Assembly: GCA_946965045.2 (NCBI GenBank)
Contig: OX337241.1
Span: 2,356,001-2,420,000, forward strand
DNA length: 64,000 nucleotides
Direction of reading: 5' to 3'
Source: Epithemia pelagica
Taxonomy: Eukaryota > Protista > Bacillariophyta
The position numbers and the translations under genes are program-made. The notes beneath the pieces were generated by a model that saw only the letters and a list, made by a program, of their open reading frames with translations, did no database searches and was not told where the DNA came from. Of the stretch, positions 1,558-11,160 are shown one piece after another; the first letter of the stretch is position 1; every line of letters begins with the position of its first letter.

Positions 1558-2402
1558 AAAAGACCTTGGGTCGGAAAGCACCAAATCCGATCGAGTCGTC
1601 CAGCCAGACAAGGAGGAACTGACTGTAGTAGTCAAAGCGTTGTCTTTTCGTTCCTCAGTGTCACCACAAGGCTTTGCAAATTCCAAATACTCCACCGAAT
1701 CAAGTTCGTCGTTCTCGTTCGTACGGCCTCCAACGACAAAGATGCGGTGGCCAATCACTGCACTGGCGCAAAATTGTCGAGGAACAGTCATGGACGGTCC
1801 CGCAGTGACACTGTGATTGTTGGTATCTATAATATCCACCGACGACAAATAATAACGATCGTTGTAACCACCCATTACAACAATGTATCGGTTGTGAACC
1901 GCAACAGCACTACATCCTTTTCGTCCCGTTGATAACCGACAATCCAACATGACCCAATGGATCTTCTGTGAACTTGAAATCGCAGATGGTGGCAGCAATC
2001 ATTGGAATCAATCCGTTCGATACAATCTAAATATGATCTTCCATTGTATCCTCCCATGACGTAGACGCCACCATTGCACACAACAGCGGCATGTCCGTGA
2101 CGACTCTGGTTCATGGGTGGCCCCCCTCGCCACTGCTTGTGGGATTCTGCTAAATTCAATACAAGAATGGAATTGACATAACCAGGACCTTGTTTCCAAC
2201 CTCCCAACACGACGACCGATTGTCTCTTGTGGTTGTGGTGGTTGTCGTCCGTATCGAAATGATCCAGTACGACCGAAGCATGACCTGAGCGCCATCCTCC
2301 CTCCAGCGGAGGCCAGTCGTTTCGATTCCATTCTGGTGTTGTCTCGTCGTCGTCGAACAGGACGACAAGGCCCGACTGCCATGCTTGTTCTTGCAGTGTC
2401 AT
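1558..2402 (-). pseudogene. Kelch-repeat gene, 5' part, with a 1-nt frameshift near 1997 and truncated by the inversion
   Basis: Repeated blades HAAVVCNGGVYVMGG, CSAVAVHNRYIVVMGG and CASAVIGHRIFVVGG are split over ORFs 1875-2402 and 1414-1998. Confidence 0.85.
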
Positions 2403-2517
2403 TCTGCTCCCATATATATTCTATGGTTGCCTTCACTCCAAACTCCAAAGAAGAACGACCACCGATTGGATTGTGGTTGCGCGAGTGAAGACGACCCGTC
2501 ATCCGTCGTCGTAAATC

Positions 2518-2728
2518 TACTTTAATAGCCAGGGTGGACGAGGAGGAGCTAGGGTGTGAGGAGTGGCTTAACTCCGAGAAGGGCAATAGCGACGAGGAGT
2601 GGACTGCCCCTGTGAGATCCGCGTAAGCGGATCGAGGGGGCAGTCCACGACGAGAAGCTATTGCCCGACGAGGAGTTAAGCCACGAGGAGCGCCCTGCGA
2701 CGAGGAGTTCCCCGGGGCTATTAAAGTA
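2518..2728. repeat. Nested inverted-repeat rod (fold-back) with interspersed (GA)CGAG(G/A)AG direct repeats
   Basis: Paired stems: 2518-2530/2716-2728, 2545-2550/2706-2711, 2551-2556/2691-2696, 2564-2574/2673-2683, 2581-2590/2657-2666, 2600-2610/2637-2647 and 2616-2622/2627-2633, closed by a GTAA loop. Confidence 0.9.
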
Positions 2729-2887
2729 TGTTAGCTTCCTTTGTCACGAGGAGTCCTGCCCGCGCACCCTAGGTAATTTTTGGTCTTCCTAAGTGATCGT
2801 TTCTCTCAATCGATACTTAGTAATCGTTGGCCTATTTAGCTTTCTACATTCGCGCCGGCACACTTTTAGTTAGGTATCTTGCTTGCG

Positions 2888-2985
2888 TGCTTGCGCACCT
2901 CATCCGATTGCTCGCGTTGCTCAAATTGCATCATACTGTCGTGCTTGCGCAACAAATCCGATGGCTCGCGTAAGTCAAATAGGTA
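2888..2985. repeat. Two imperfect direct copies with ~53-bp period
   Basis: gtgcttgcgcacctcatccgattgctcgcg (2888) versus gtgcttgcgcaacaaatccgatggctcgcg (2941). Confidence 0.75.
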
Positions 2986-3136
2986 ATTAGGACAAGTCGT
3001 GTTGTTTACATAGGCGTGACACAGGAATACATAAGTAATTTCTATTTATTACTTACATCCCCCACCCCCCAACTGACAATCCCACGATTCTCTCGTACAG
3101 ACGACACATTTTGTGCAACAACAACACAACAACATC

Positions 3137-6100
3137 ATGCGAAAAGGAAGACGACCGACCATGGTGACTCCTCCTCCTTCTGGAGGAGCTGCTCATGCTT
3201 CCAAACAGGTTGATTGTGGAGTCATAGACCTTTGCACCCCTCCTGATGTAATAGATCTTTGTAGTTCGTCTTCGTCGTCTAGTTGCTCATCAGACTCTTC
3301 GGGCGAAACTCTCGTCTTTGTCACCAAGGACAATGCAACAGACGAATGGGATGGCAATCTCTTTCGCCGCTCGGAACTCTACCACGACTGTACTGGGTCA
3401 TCCGACGACTTCAGCACCTGTAGTTCCGACCCTTGGATCATGGAAATCCTACAGAGACGGTAAGTTTTCGCCGCGTTTCCCACCATTGTCGTGTGTTTTC
3501 GTTCCAGACGTCTTCCCAAAATTTCAATCCACCTGCCATGCGCGCGCGCATGGTCGAGTCGCTGTTTTGTTTCCTACTGATTCCTACGTGCAGCCTACGT
3601 ATCCGCACATTGTCGCAAGTGTCACCGTCTTCACTTTCCTCACTCTCATTTTTCATTGTGCATCGTTTTTTCATTGTCGTTTCGCAGCCCGACCATGGCG
3701 ACTCGACAATCTCGCCGCCAAATAGAGCGGGCGGCTGCCAACAGAAACAACGACATTCCCACCAACAACAATGTCAATCCATACCGCAATCCAGTCCGTC
3801 CACCCGATAGCCGCCAGAGTCGTCCACCCTTGTCGAATGTGAACCTTCCTTCCCAAAATCGTCGTCGTCTTCCTCTTCGTCAACAAGGACAAGAAGCACC
3901 CGAGCAATCAAAGTAAGTAACCTATGTCTGAGAATGTGTTGTTTACTATTGTTATCTGTCTCGTTTCTAACCTCATTGTGTCTTTAGCAATGTGGCTGTG
4001 CCCACACTCTCGTCTCGTCGTCAACAAAACATGGCGGAAGTTCTTCCAAACGCGACGGATGCTCTCCTCAACGCTCCAACGATAGTTGAGTCTAACTTGG
4101 TGGATACCAAGCTAGTATCCCAAGCTCTAGTGAAGAAGAAGCATCTGGCTTGGGATGCTGAGTCGAACAGCATGAAGATTGGCGAGGTGTCGTTCAACCC
4201 GCCCACCATGGATTCCACGCGAGCACGATCTTTGTCGGCCTGGGCGCAGTACTGCCGGCTGTCGCCGACCATCTACGGCAATAACACCTTCACCATCCGT
4301 GACCTCACCGGATGCAAGGCGTCATACGACAAGGAGAAGGCGGCGTCTGTGAACAAGTTTCTCGGGTGCATTCAGAGGCATCACGAGATGCACTTCCTGC
4401 TGGAGATTGTTCAAGATGTTGATGAACTGAGTGGAGCTGACATTCCCACTCCTCTTCTCTTCCTTGCTTTGCGTGGTGCAAAGACACCCCCCAAGTTGAC
4501 ATTGTTGAATAGTGCAATCATGGTCTTCTTGGTGAACCACCGAATGCGTGGGTTCAACCCCGAGACCGACGACGTAGAAGATCCGAAGTGGTTCTTCCAA
4601 CCCAACACCACCATGAAGATGCTAAATCACATCTTTGCCTTGATCAAGACTCACGGCATCGTCATCGCCCAGAGTGATCTTCGCAATGGTTTCGGCTCGT
4701 ACCATGGCTACCTGTCCGACATCTGGAACCGAGCTGCTCTCGTCCGTCCCGAATTCGGCCGCCTCCCCCAACGTGCACCCACGGCATTCGACGATGAAGA
4801 AAAAATGCGGACGTGTGAGCCAGAGCTTCGACCGTTCGAAGAAGGTCAGTACTCTCTTGCCTTAAGCATGGGAGTGTACAAATCGTCACGAGATTTTGGC
4901 CTTCGAGGCCCTGAGGTAAGTTGTTGTTGTTGTTGTTGTTGTCGATTGTTATTCTTGTTGTTGCTGTTGTCTAACAGTTTGGTTGTTGCATGCTGTTGTC
5001 TCCAGATAAGATTACTTAAAGTATCCGACCTGATTTTCAAAGATTCTCTAGACAAATCGTTTGGGTTGTTGGCTGGTCTTCCTGCGATTATTTTGCGTGA
5101 GTCTGTGTTGGAAAAATCTTCGACTCTCGCGACGAACAATCTGGCTTTCGACAGAACTGTCAACGACACGCAAGACTCGACGCACATGGTGATCGAGAAT
5201 CCTGACGACAAATTCTCGACGTACAAGATTTTGATGCACCTCATGAAGGTGGGCCACCCGCCGGGGTGGCAAGGTCTGTTTTTTCTAGAGAAGATACCCG
5301 CGAAACATTTGAAGGCCCGCAAGGATGGTGCGAAGCACCTCGGTTGGACAGAGTTGGTTCCTGAGACCTCAGAGACCGACGCCGATGGGTCGGGCTTCAA
5401 GTGTGCGGGTAGATTGGGTGTAAATTGGCCGAATAGGAACGCCCGTCAACTTGCCATCCGATGCAAGTTCGACAACGCCGAAAAAGTGACGTTTCGGACT
5501 GGTCGACGCACGGGCATCTCGAATGTTGCCAACTGTGGAGTGCCACAGAAAGCGTCGAATTCCTTTGCCCGTCACAAGTCGACGGAAGTCAACGTACTGT
5601 ACCAGGACGTCACGGCTGAAAATCAAGTTCGGACCGTCACGGCCAACTGGTACCGTCCTCCCGAAAAGAGCGACGAGGCCGACAAAGAAAACACGAAGAA
5701 TGGTACGTACACTCATTGCATGAATCCCTCTTTCTACTTTGTTACTAACTACTCTGCTATTATGTTTAGATGAGAAGGGATCCAAGAAGAAAGAGTCAAA
5801 AACCGCTTCATCCCCCTCGTCCTCGTCGTCATCCTCCACCGACATTGATGCCTTTATGAAAAAGGCCAAGAAGAAGATTCGCCGTCGCAAGGCGTTGCAG
5901 CAGCTCAAGGCTGCCAAGAGACAGGACGACGATTCGTCCATCGAAGACGAGGATTCATTGGCGCGAATCCTCCGTCTCTTGGACGACAATCCATCCAAGT
6001 CGTCCAAGTCGCAAACCCATGGTAAGTTGATTGTTGCTTTGTTGTTTTCTTGGTTGCATCGATCTCATTCCGTCTTCTCTTCTTGTCACAGACACGAAAT

Positions 6101-7287
6101 CCAAGAAAAAACGCAAGAAGAAGAAGAAGAAGAAGAAGACGACGAATAAGAAGTCCATCGATTACTCGTCTTCGTCGTCGTCGTCGTCATCGGATGTGGT
6201 TCTTGAAGTTCATTCTCACAGTCGTAAGAAAAAGAAAACTTCACCGCCTTCCACCATCGTTGGTACGTAGATTGTTGGCTTCTGGTTGATTGCTATATTG
6301 TGGTTTCTCACTGTTTTCGTCATTTCTCCATCACACTTGTTGGTTTCAGTTGCCTCTACGAAGCCATCACCACCACCTAGCGACCATGCTGTGGTGACAC
6401 AACCACCACCACCTGGAGTTGGGCCTCCACCACCAGCAACAACAACAGCAACAACGACAGTGGCCGTAGCGCAGCCACCGCCACCACCACCACGTCCATC
6501 AACTGTGGAGCAACATGCGCCGCCTCCAAGCATTGCGACTGTGCCACCACCACCTCCACCAGCCATGACAACGACAATTCCACCGTCGCTGTCGTCAATA
6601 GTGGAACAACAGGTGGTAGATCCAACCACCATTACGGCCGTGCAACCACCACCCACAACAACCATTGCAGTCTTTCAACCTCCAGCACCACCTGCATCAA
6701 CATTGGAACAACATGCCCCACCTCCATGCACGGGGGGGACCACGAAACCACCACCAACAACGACATCGTCAACGGCCCTGGTTCCGATGGAAAACAACAA
6801 CAACCACTACGAGTCCTCCAACCATCATCAAACCCTCGGAGTCGTGCAGCCACCAGCACCACCTCCATCAACATCGGAGCAACATGCTCCTCCCCCAAGC
6901 ACGACGTCCATGCAACCACCACCACCTTCGACATCGTCCACGCCCCATCACGGAGGGTATCACCACACCAGTAGTCGAGACCGCGGGGTTGATTGTCGTG
7001 TGGAGGAGCACCATCGTGTTGCTTATCATCGCAACAACTGGTACTCCCCACCTCCACCATCTGAGTCGCCACCATATCATCATCATCCTCATCACCACCA
7101 ATCTTCCCGCGGATACCATCACCGCCCATACACACCATCACCACCACCACCGCCGTACTACCGTGACATCTACCGTGGTGGTGGATATACTCCACCACCT
7201 CCTCCACATCATCATCACCATCACCATCACCGTGGTTCGCGTCACCATGGCGGCAGCCATGGATATGGCCGTGGCTACCACTACTGA
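3137..7287 (+). CDS. Tyrosine recombinase (Crypton-like), 7 exons, ~1177 aa
   Basis: Exons 3137-3459, 3688-3912, 3988-4915, 5006-5702, 5770-6021, 6092-6262 and 6350-7287 total 3534 nt, all with GT-AG introns and frame preserved. Motifs: FGLRGPE|IRLLKVSDL (catalytic R), FRTGRRTG (HxxR box), ARHKS (H/W) and VLYQD (catalytic Y). Confidence 0.8.
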
Positions 7288-8510
7288 GTCTTCGGTACGT
7301 TTGCTTTTGTTGTTGCATTCTTGTTTGATTGTTGTCTCTTTCTCTTACCATTCTATCACTCTTTTTGACAGATTGATATCGCTTTTGCTCTTTTGCATGT
7401 CCCTTGCAAGGTGGTCTCTAGCTTGATGTCTCGATAGGTACGTCAGATTTCCTGGTCCGCGTTCCACTCCACTTTACACACCAATTTCTCACGCGTTCTC
7501 GATTTTTTGCTATTTTGTCTTGGCATGAAATTTCGTGGTGCATTTCGCTTTGCTACTGAATTTTCCGTGTCTTGTGTACGCTTTGTGTCGTGTGTTTGAT
7601 TGTTACGCCCTGCATCGTGATTCTTTGTTTCCGTGTCTGTGTTTCCGTTTTTGCTTTTGCTATTTGATTCGTGTTGTTCTCGCCTTTTCCGTTGGTGCAC
7701 CTCTTGTTCGCTTTGTCCTGTTCCTGTTCTCTTTCTCTCTCCTGGGTGTACTACTTTTCGCTGTGTGTACTACTTTCCTTGGTGTGCTACTTTTTCGTTT
7801 GGGCTATTCTAATTTTTATACTCTAAAATAAAAATCCAAGTACAGTAATTTTTCGGGCTTATGTAGAGTGGGGAGTAGGTGGGGGAGGGGTAGGACGACG
7901 AGTGACAAAGGTAGCTGCTGACCAGTGGATCGCACATAAACTACATGACAATCTCCTAGTAGGGGATTGCACAGTCATACGAATAGGGGTACAGGTACAG
8001 GGGATTCCTACAAGTACTACATTGTAGTAGTGTGTGGCTTGTTCGACGCCCGGCGCGTAAGCACGTGTGTGGATCGTCGCACACGTGGGGGACTTCTCTG
8101 GGGGGTACTGAAAGCATGTGATTCTCTTAAGTAAGAGAGAGTGACGCAAGCTGGATGCACGTGACAAGGACGTGCGCAGCACGTGCTTTATTTGACAATG
8201 GCGTGCGTGCTGCCATCGTTTGTTAGGAGGGGGCAGTAGTGCCGTTGAGAGAGTTGAGACACTCGGTGCTTGCAGTTTGCAGTCTGGTCGTTCGTGTCCA
8301 CGACAACTCGTGATTCGCCGAGAGCAGCTTGCGCCTTCGTCTTTGGGCGCAACACATGTGTGTGTCGTTGCGCTGTTCTCTTCTTTGTAGTGTTGTTTTC
8401 TGTTTTGTTGTTTGTTGTTGTTGTGCTGGAGAATCTATCCATATCATCTCTCTGTCGTATCATTCTTCTCTCTAGCTTGCAGCAACCAAGGCAACACACA
8501 CCTCTTCTGC

Positions 8511-8512
8511 TA

Positions 8513-8546
<34 letters not shown>
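8511..8546 (+). promoter_or_regulatory. TATA-like motif plus (AG)15 microsatellite upstream of the ODC-like gene
   Basis: tataaaa at 8511 followed by an AG repeat to 8546, about 70 bp before ATG 8614. Confidence 0.45.
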
Positions 8547-8547
<1 letters not shown>

Positions 8548-8613
8548 ACGTCTTGTTGTTGACAAACGAATCGGACCGACCATCTTGAAGTATTATTGCG
8601 ACCAAGAGCAACC

Positions 8614-8740
8614 ATGGCAACGGCCGCCACGACGAGTCCCACCATGACCACTCCAGTAGTAGTGCCTCCTCCTCCTCCCATGAAAAAGAATCGATTGCAA
8701 GCACGAGAACAAGTGGCCATGGCATGGCACCAACGACGTC

Positions 8741-8776
<36 letters not shown>

Positions 8777-11160
8777 CGGGCCAAGACTCCTCCTCCCAAC
8801 GAAGCACGCGTCCTCCCGCATCGACTGCTTCGTCGAGTCGATCGACGGCCCTCACCACACAACCACAACCACAACAACCCCCTGCGTGGTTTCCCTTTTG
8901 GTCCGCCTTGGTGCAAAAAGCGAGCAGCGTACAACGCTGTGGAGGTTGCACGACTACCAACCACCACAAGAGTTTTACCACCAAAGGCCACCCAACCACA
9001 ACTTCATTCCACAAACCACCACCAAACTTTGCTCGACGACCCTCCCACCAACAACGATTCGTGGACTCCAGCAGCAAGGGTAGCAGTAATAGTAGTACTA
9101 CTCCTACGACGACGACGACAAGCCCCACAACGTTTCCGTCCATGTTGGCCTTGCATCAAGCCAATGCCTTGTCACGACAAATTGAAACCCTACTCTTGCA
9201 TCATCAAGGACCGAGTCAACGGAATTTGGGGGAACCACAACCAGAGCAAGAACAAGACGACGACCCGGAACCACACCACCAAGACCAAACGCCCATGACT
9301 CGGACGACGGCCACCGAACCCCTTGCTTCCTCCTCCAAGTCGTCTTCTTCTTCTTCTTCCTTACTCGTGTCCATTTTATCCTCGCAATACAATTTGGAAC
9401 AGGCCGTGTACGAAATGGCCCAGGCTCGGACTCGCGCCTTTTGGCTCGTGGATTTGAGTACGGTCGTTCATCGATTGGTGGAATGGGATCAAACATGGAA
9501 TGCCACGAGTAGTAGTAGTACGACGCATGTGCCCCCGGTACGACTCTTGTATCGCGTCTCGGCCAATGCCCATCCCATTTTGTTGCGCGTCTTGACCTGT
9601 TGTTGCACCACGACGACAACGACCAGCAGCAGCACAACAACAAGATCCTTGAGAGGAACCAAACAACCCCAACAACAACAACCAGAACAGGAACCCGTGG
9701 TGCAATTGGTGACGAGCAATGCGTGGGATTTGGAACAAGTCCAACACTTTGGTGCGTCGCAGCCGAAGCAGCAACCACACCCACCATTAGTGGTGACGGT
9801 GTGGGATGATTCCACCTGGACGGGCAAACCCAATGCCTATTTGCGCAAAGCCTGGCTCGGACGACCACAATCCTCCTCCGCGTCATCATCACAACCACCA
9901 CAAGCACAACCCGCCATTTCCTGTTTGGCCGTAAATGGACCCCACGAAGTGCATCGCATTTGGAATGCCTTGCAACGGGCCACGCAACGACGACGACAAC
10001 GACCAAACCAATCGTCACCCAACAACAACCACCACACTCCTCGTGCCGCCGGCTTGTCGGTCTGTCTTCGATTGCCCGTCGGTCACCCCCACCAATGGTT
10101 GGACACGTGGATTTCAACGGTCCAGGCCTTGGACCGGTTGGCCGTCACGCACCAGAACCAGGACCAGGACGAGTCGTCCTCCTCCTTGTTTGGCATTGTG
10201 GTGGTGAGTGTGGAAGTGTCCGATTTGATCCACTCCTCCAACGCACCACAAAAGGAGGAGGAGCACACGTCTCCCGTAGTAGACTATACGAGTACTCCGT
10301 CGAGTACGACTCCCCGACCGCCGTATTCGTTGGACTCGACCAGCTGGAAAGCCTTGATAGAGTGTCTGACGTGGAATCACCACAACCAGGATCACGACGA
10401 CACGAATGACGACACGCGACGAGTCGCATCGCCGCAGGCCATTCGAGTCGAATTGACGGGTTCGGTGGAATTGGATCCGGCCATGGTGGAATTTGTGTCC
10501 GTCCTCCAACGACAGGCGGCATGCTGCTCCACTACGACGACGACACGGCCACAACCACTGATTTCCGAACTGGCCATTGACATTACCGGTCCCCTCTTGA
10601 CGTCGGCGGGAGCCTTGTGTACACGGGTCATTGGTGTCCGAGAAAGTAGTAGTGACCCTACCAATCACGACGAGAGCAGCGCGAGTGCTAGCGCGAGTGC
10701 TCCGACGACGACCCCCCAAACCACAGAGGAGCCACCCGCCACAACAAGGACGACGACCCGTTCCAAACGCCGACTTCATTATTACATTGACGATGGATGT
10801 TATGGATCCCTCTATCAAGAAGAAGGAGGAAAAAGTGCCGCTCATCCACTTCAACCGGTTCCCCTCATTACCACGCCGCGGAGTACTACAGCAAGTAATA
10901 GCAACCAGGACACGCGGACAAACTCGACCCAGGACAACGACAATCACAACAACAAGGACACGTTTGTCTCGACCGTCTGGGGTCCCACCTGCGATGGATT
11001 GGATCGAGTGTGCAATGACATTTGGTTGCCGGAATTGCAACGAGACGATTGGCTCGTCTTTCCCATTCACTGCAGTGGAGGAGAAGGATTGGGAACCGCC
11101 TTTAATGGATTTTGTCCACCCGATACCGCCTATTGCGTCCTCGGATACTTTCGAGAGTAA
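8614..11160 (+). CDS. Ornithine-decarboxylase-fold protein, probably inactive (antizyme-inhibitor-like), copy 1
   Basis: C-terminal YYIDDGCYGSL, STVWGPTCDGLD, LPELQRDDWLVF and GTAFNGF motifs. The PLP-lysine motif YAVKCN reads YRVSAN. Confidence 0.75.

Follow-up and report, generated by a model that had tools for sequence, protein, structure and literature searches.

A conserved, G.A-zipped fold-back at the tip of a Crypton-like element in Epithemia pelagica as a candidate recombination site

The 64,000-nt stretch of Epithemia pelagica DNA analysed here (OX337241.1, hereafter the window, whose coordinates are used throughout) contains a rod-like fold-back that lies at the left tip of a precisely inserted mobile element, pairs onward with the right end of that element across the joint of its two ends and is conserved with covarying stems in a family of related elements. 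We read this rod as a cis-acting recombination site at the end of a Crypton-like transposon, possibly one that is used as folded single-stranded DNA, and would give this reading a probability of roughly 0.55. What is observed is the fold and its place at the tip of an exactly inserted element, together with pairing across the joint and covarying stems; from these observations we infer both the role as a recombination site and the action as single-stranded DNA. The features of the element copy in the window (W) are collected in Table 1.

Table 1 Features of the element copy in the window and of its terminal fold-back
Feature	Position	Strand	Remarks
Target-side GTCG at left tip	2508-2511	+	imperfect 4-bp direct repeat with terminal GTAG (7911-7914)
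Whole mobile element	2512-7914	+	5,403 bp, boundary ambiguous by 1 nt (shared G); starts TAAATC, ends AAAGGTAG
Left tip TAAATC	2512-2517	+	poorly paired 6-nt bubble opposite 2729-2734, directly 3' of crossover point
Rod	2518-2728	+	seven stems, GTAA apex, four symmetric G.A-zipped segments, asymmetric loop below apex
Rod stem 1	2518-2530/2716-2728		
Rod stem 2	2532-2538/2708-2714		
Rod stem 3	2547-2556/2691-2698		
Rod stem 4	2564-2574/2673-2683		
Rod stem 5	2582-2590/2657-2665		
Rod stem 6	2600-2610/2637-2647		
Rod stem 7	2616-2622/2627-2633		
Rod apical loop GTAA	2623-2626		
Rod core (stems 5-7 and apex)	2582-2665	+	best-conserved DNA of element family; near-invariant alignment columns
Arm 3' of rod	2729-2761	+	bubble TGTTAG, stem CTTCCTTTGTCA, motif CGAGGAG, stem TCCTGCCC; pairs with right end
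Main recombinase open frame	4031-5773	+	580 aa as called, unspliced intron near 4915-4990; same strand as purine-rich rod strand
Right terminal arm	7888-7914	+	GGGTAGGA, CGACGAG, TGACAAAGGTAG; extends rod once ends joined

The rod and its internal loops

Folding of the region confirmed the 210-nt rod-like fold-back with seven stems that had originally been predicted. As RNA the plus strand of 2500-2760 reaches a minimum free energy of -146.9 kcal/mol against a shuffle mean of -88.5 (z -12.0), with 0 of 200 shuffles folding as well, and the minus strand of the rod region reaches -117.2 kcal/mol (z -9.4). The difference between the strands is small in a DNA energy model (-64.0 vs -57.7) because this model has no term for sheared G.A pairs. 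Copies of a purine-rich motif lie at 2537, 2557, 2575, 2591, 2649, 2667, 2684, 2699 and 2747, positions that matched those given earlier, and are spaced 15-18 bp apart along the rod. Of the form GACGAGRAG the window has 12 copies where 1.07 would be expected, five of them inside the rod. Elsewhere in the window CGAGGAG or GACGAGGAG forms no similar array or fold-back, the sequence there being apparently ordinary, mostly protein-coding and in several cases duplicated. The GNRA tetraloop of the original prediction holds for the window, where GTAA closes the rod, but does not extend to the family, the apical loops of other copies reading GTCA, TATAA and ATCA. As a separate observation, positions 10037 and 44122 of the window share identical 130-nt contexts 34 kb apart and thus mark a large internal duplication.

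The internal loops had been taken to be unpaired and a possible array of protein-binding sites. Alignment of the left arm with the reversed right arm shows them instead to be symmetric segments zipped by tandem G.A/A.G oppositions that are flanked by G-C pairs, typically in the order C-G, G.A, A.G, G-C, and they are probably stacked non-canonical pairs rather than open loops. When G.A is counted along with G-C the 10-mer CGACGAGGAG is a perfect palindrome (C1-G10, G2.A9, A3.G8, C4-G7, G5.A6), and it is because the motif pairs with a copy of itself that it can stand as a direct repeat on both arms of an inverted repeat. Four independent rods were aligned with a strand-neutral scoring that rewards Watson-Crick pairs only, and their non-Watson-Crick oppositions comprised A.G 77, A.A 10, G.G 9, C.T 6, G.T 5, A.C 5 and T.T 4. 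The 37 tandems found in five rods are without exception 5'-GA-3'/3'-AG-5', the reverse orientation never occurring, and most of them have a C-G or G-C pair beside them. From thermodynamic and NMR work this is the stable tandem orientation in DNA and RNA alike. On the minus strand the G.A tandems become C.T/T.C, and therefore only the plus strand closes into a continuous rod.

Tandem sheared G.A motifs (5'-Y-GA-R-3' in DNA and 5'-GA-3'/3'-AG-5' in RNA) were reportedly characterised by Ebel et al. in 1992, by SantaLucia and Turner in 1993 and by Chou, Zhu and Reid in 1997. The tandems of the rod have the same orientation, mostly in the context C-GA-G; earlier examples come from short model duplexes, centromeric repeats and RNA motifs, whereas here the motif lies in a transposon end. 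We know of no transposon end made of a regular series of tandem G.A motifs. A natural helix of about 100 bp with a tandem G.A step every 10 pairs or so is an unusual nucleic-acid design that is worth study in itself.

The mobile element, its empty site and its recombinase

A paralogue of the kelch frame beside the rod, 90% identical to it, lies on the same 1.19-Mb contig of an ENA assembly at a distance of about 200 kb. At this paralogous locus (L120), which is 92-98% identical to the window on both flanks, position 2511 is joined straight to 7915; the sequence between them in the window is therefore an insertion, and the rod starts 6 nt inside its left tip. The ends are confirmed by a second copy (L126) that is 97-98% identical to the window from 2506 to 7915 and no further and lies in different flanking DNA. 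The element tips (TAAATCTAC... and ...AAAGGTAG) carry neither terminal inverted repeats nor LTRs, and the left arm of an inverted repeat (2733-2761/7888-7916) is subterminal, lying 221 nt in from the tip. The empty site at L120 holds a single GTCG with nothing duplicated, so that there is no target-site duplication. The left flank reads GTCG in W and L126, GTAG in L131 and GTTG in L127 and the right end is GTAG in all four, which makes a GTNG/GTAG junction repeat imperfect at its third base. Whether the rod travels with the recombinase element or with kelch promoters had been set beforehand as a check on the original prediction; the kelch promoter at L120 has no rod and the rod thus belongs to the recombinase element. 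A kelch-promoter element was rejected on the same observation. A MITE at 2518-2728 flanked by a TA or TTAA duplication was rejected as well, the empty site placing the boundaries 6 nt further left and 5.2 kb further right.

These loci offered several observations apart from the rod. Both young copies, W (2500-2511) and L126 (6470-6480), have TCGTCG immediately before the insertion, a sequence complementary to CGACGA within the motif of the element itself; in two related insertions this may reflect chance or a target preference. A 113-bp segment in the proline-rich frame is inverted between the window (6421-6533) and L126 (10571-10683). Roughly 100 bp beyond the right side of the empty Crypton site, L120 has a 7.1-kb insertion of its own (2678-9802, window equivalent about 8022). 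Inverted repeats of 53 nt, 94% complementary, enclose this insertion, and within it lies a Copia-type element (RVT_2) whose two direct repeats of 268 nt are identical and stand 5.2 kb apart; the whole looks like a retrotransposon nested in a TIR element. The kelch 5' exon (window 2001-2400) has a summed contig depth of about 200x the single-copy level and kelch copies part from one another precisely at the start codon (loose ends at 2402), which suggests a kelch gene family that is very large and whose promoters are unrelated.

The protein encoded by the main open frame is reasonably but not rigorously supported as a tyrosine recombinase. A structure model of its C-terminal 256 aa (pLDDT 74) gave, as the complete list of structural matches at Z of at least 4, XerA (7.2), Cre (7.1), QRICH1/DUF3504 (5.9), the Tn1549 integrase (5.9) and topoisomerase I (4.3), with Foldseek E-values that are not significant. 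In an alignment of 28 relatives R168-R169, R190-H191 and Y200 are near-invariant and the H-to-Y spacing is 9 as in Cre, active-site box II reading RxxR rather than HxxR. The Pfam family Phage_integrase weakly matched five of the 28 (best E 0.0021) and Pfam gave no match to the recombinase frame of the window itself. Word-based protein searches with the recombinase frame, its C-terminal part and the translated rod returned no match, nor did the recombinase sequence match any solved structure, and relatives came from HMMER only, an exhaustive search with the 580-aa frame yielding 210 of them.

Judged by its sequence the element passes as a Crypton. It shares with Cryptons a recombinase-like protein, tips without TIRs or LTRs, the lack of a target-site duplication and the lack of any detected reverse transcriptase, for which Pfam gave no match in the element frames 3113-3460, 3992-5770 and 6286-7284 (introns unresolved). 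Crypton termini have been described as carrying 4-6-bp direct repeats that serve as recombination substrates (Kojima and Jurka 2011, PMC3212892), and the imperfect GTNG/GTAG junction repeats match this description. CryptonS occur in oomycetes and diatoms, which the diatom host fits, and the DUF3504 domain of QRICH1 is itself derived from Cryptons (PMC3212892). The element differs in its termini, which are unlike the TATGG found in most CryptonS (PMC3212892), and in the RxxR of its box II. The words 'hairpin' and 'palindrom' have 0 occurrences in the text of the Crypton paper (PMC3212892), and a full-text literature search returned no published description of such a Crypton end hairpin.

Conservation and covariation in the element family

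A rod of the same design was found at four more loci of the same assembly, L126, L127, L131 and L132, whose recombinases are 87%, 46%, 46% and 39% identical to that of W. At each of them about 1.2-1.5 kb separate the rod from the recombinase frame downstream of it, and the purine-rich strand of the rod is the sense strand. Our comparison of covariation covers four independent lineages, all from one genome. In the part that could be aligned with MAFFT (56 pairs; RNAalifold was also run) 92.7% of cells were paired, 9 pairs had changed on both sides and 16 extra pair types were seen, against 30-42% paired and 0-1 double changes in slid controls. The stem TGGACTG/CAGTCCA, for example, has become TGTACTG/CAGTACA in L132, and a further copy seen at a loose end has a compensated change in its apical stem (AAATCCGC/GCGGATTT). 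The outer stems of W, L127 and L132 have no common sequence, yet each is self-complementary. The motif and the rod core (2582-2665) are near-invariant across the family alignment, and in L127 and L132 the rod is the best-conserved DNA of the element, with 80-82% identity over 121-140 nt vs 72-74% for the best coding segment. The original prediction had called the structure selected and had pointed to other recombinase elements, with or without a rod and compensatory changes, as the place to look; the covarying stems and the motif kept alongside recombinases that are only 39-46% identical bear it out.

Beyond these five loci, part of the rod is also covered by contigs from two metagenomes, with 1 difference in a marine one and 10 in one from a biofilm. 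Two specific rod-core patterns had no match among JGI metagenome contigs, and the matches of generic motif-array patterns to viral contigs were acidic coding repeats only. A more distant element of the same genome (L134) has no rod. Another, L137, with a recombinase 37% identical to that of W, has a hairpin of about 170 nt (4570-4740, z -10.6) that lies equally far upstream and whose stem is nearly perfect and has no G.A steps. The wider family can hence do without the zipper, and the hairpin of L137 argues that long end hairpins are general in these elements and the zipper specific to one subfamily. The distant recombinases L128-L130, L133, L135, L136 and L138 lie on short metagenome or Logan contigs with too little flank to judge a rod.

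Were the rod a neutral by-product, be it of a fold-back duplication, a nested MITE or a feature of the kelch promoter, one might point to its place 110 bp from the kelch start codon and to a summed contig depth of 40-60x the single-copy level over the rod when the element body stands at about 1x. The depth is probably explained by the rod core, which remains 80-87% identical between subfamilies whose bodies are too diverged to align at 80%. The paralogous kelch promoter has no rod, and position, strand and compensated stems are kept in elements with recombinases 39-46% identical, which a by-product would not lead one to expect. A fold-back duplication would moreover yield an inverted motif and not a direct one, so that the earlier argument from direct motifs and inverted spacers against such an origin has held. 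We consider an origin of this kind very improbable.

The same conservation bears on whether the motif copies are instead duplex-DNA binding sites, comparable to the arm-type sites of lambda attP or to iterons, at which the N-terminal part of the recombinase or another protein of the element would bind the direct motifs and build a synaptic complex, the palindromy being secondary. That the motif itself is kept and not only its pairing potential, that its copies are 15-18 bp apart and that the core is conserved beyond the needs of pairing would all suit such sites. They give no account, however, of arm spacers that stay complementary through complete sequence turnover, nor of a motif that is palindromic under G-C and G.A pairing and forms tandems of the stable orientation in 37 of 37 cases. 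We hold this explanation to be unlikely as the whole account of the rod, and a duplex-binding role of the motif may coexist with its use as a recombination site.

The joined ends and a possible mode of transposition

The last 27 nt of the element (7888-7914) are complementary to 2735-2761, within the 33 nt that follow the rod, and the right-arm motif CGACGAG comes to stand opposite CGAGGAG (2747-2753) as C-G, GA/AG, G-C, GA/AG, G-C. When the ends are joined the predicted fold of W goes from -153.2 kcal/mol for the left end alone to -201.8 kcal/mol, the gain in predicted pairing across W, L126, L131 and L127 being 26 to 51 kcal/mol, and the two ends form one predicted hairpin of about 280-290 nt. 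In this joined form the crossover point GTAG^TAAATC lies near the hairpin base, flanked on one side by a conserved stem (CAAAGGTAG vs CTTCCTTTG, where W, L126 and L131 share a T.T mismatch) and on the other by a bubble of 6 nt that is poorly paired. No circle joint from 7914 to 2512 was among the best-supported joints listed, contigs being able to show the presence of such a joint rather than its absence.

The rod could alternatively act as RNA, either as the leader of the recombinase transcript or as a separate hairpin RNA that controls expression or is diced to small RNAs. The purine-rich strand is the sense strand of the recombinase at five of five loci, and the RNA energy model favours tandem G.A steps closed by G-C and itself picks isolated G-C pairs with 2x2 loops. 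Such a role sits poorly with the left tip just 6 nt upstream of the rod, which leaves no room for an internal promoter in an integrated copy, and with a fold that continues into a right end 5 kb away and becomes contiguous only once the ends are joined. The apical loop is not kept as GNRA, G.T is no commoner than A.C (5 vs 5) unlike in typical structured RNAs, and a scan of 2000-8500 with Rfam 15 gave no match on the rod at E up to 1. Taken together the tip position, the pairing across the joint, the tetraloop that is not conserved and the lack of a G.T excess over A.C lean towards DNA rather than RNA, and we regard a function as RNA as quite unlikely.

If the rod is a recombination site of a Crypton-like element, its use might be pictured as follows. 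The ends would come together as in an excised circle, the form through which Cryptons are believed to pass, upon which the right end would pair with the sequence after the rod and the crossover point would be placed at the hairpin base between stem and bubble, a layout like that of a core site in folded form. The recombinase would recognise the folded purine-rich strand, either in single-stranded DNA or in a cruciform arm, and would exchange strands with a GTNG target; a single strand exchange into the duplex target might then be finished by replication, as in CTX attP(+) and attC. G.A pairing on one strand only suggests that the element uses a folded single strand when moving, and the lack of a common overlap beyond GTNG together with the bubble beside the cleavage point fits a folded single-strand exchange. 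Counting against it, we know of no eukaryotic source of single-stranded circles. The wider proposal, a eukaryotic family of tyrosine-recombinase transposons that moves through a folded single-stranded DNA intermediate in which a G.A-zipped hairpin of about 280-290 nt presents the crossover site, is one that we offer tentatively, as possible but rather doubtful.

The closest likeness is to the forked hairpin of the CTX phage, attP(+), which Val and colleagues reportedly showed in 2005 to be recombined by XerCD. In both cases a hairpin of at least 150 nt on one specific strand, imperfectly paired at its centre, makes or would make the recombination site, and integration is precise without a common overlap sequence, as fits a single strand exchange resolved by replication. 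The phage system differs in being bacterial, in relying on host Xer proteins and a single-stranded phage genome and in a much shorter hairpin with no G.A zipper, and the comparison is one of mechanistic analogy only and not of membership. Integron attC sites are likewise strand-specific folded single-stranded substrates of a tyrosine recombinase (IntI on the folded bottom strand), with a structure that is kept while the stem sequence is little conserved and with non-Watson-Crick features that set the strand; the rods have their own strand asymmetry, with 77 G.A vs 6 C.T oppositions and the plus-strand fold of W stronger than the minus-strand fold by the RNA energies given above. The attC sites differ in a length of 57-141 nt, in having extrahelical bases in place of G.A tandems, in their R and L boxes with GTTRRRY and in being bacterial. 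Neither attC R/L boxes (GTTRRRY) nor XerC/XerD binding arms were found in the joint region GTAG^TAAATC. The hairpins of IS200/IS605 elements and of parvoviruses are also imperfect end palindromes that act on one DNA strand and in which mismatched bubbles matter for recognition; they are served by HUH endonucleases or Rep proteins rather than by tyrosine recombinases, those of IS608 being far shorter and those of parvoviruses being genuine telomeres of a linear genome.

Ideas on the movement of Cryptons still rest on analogy, and a cis-acting site has yet to be defined for these elements. For the element described here an empty site gives the ends to the exact base, and a long, conserved and strand-specific structure spans the joint and holds the crossover point. 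The joint-spanning hairpin thereby offers a concrete substrate for the biochemistry of eukaryotic tyrosine-recombinase transposition. Should the single-strand reading prove true, a mode of recombination so far known from bacteria only would extend to eukaryotes, and the rod would give eukaryotes their first parallel to integron attC and CTX attP(+) recombination.
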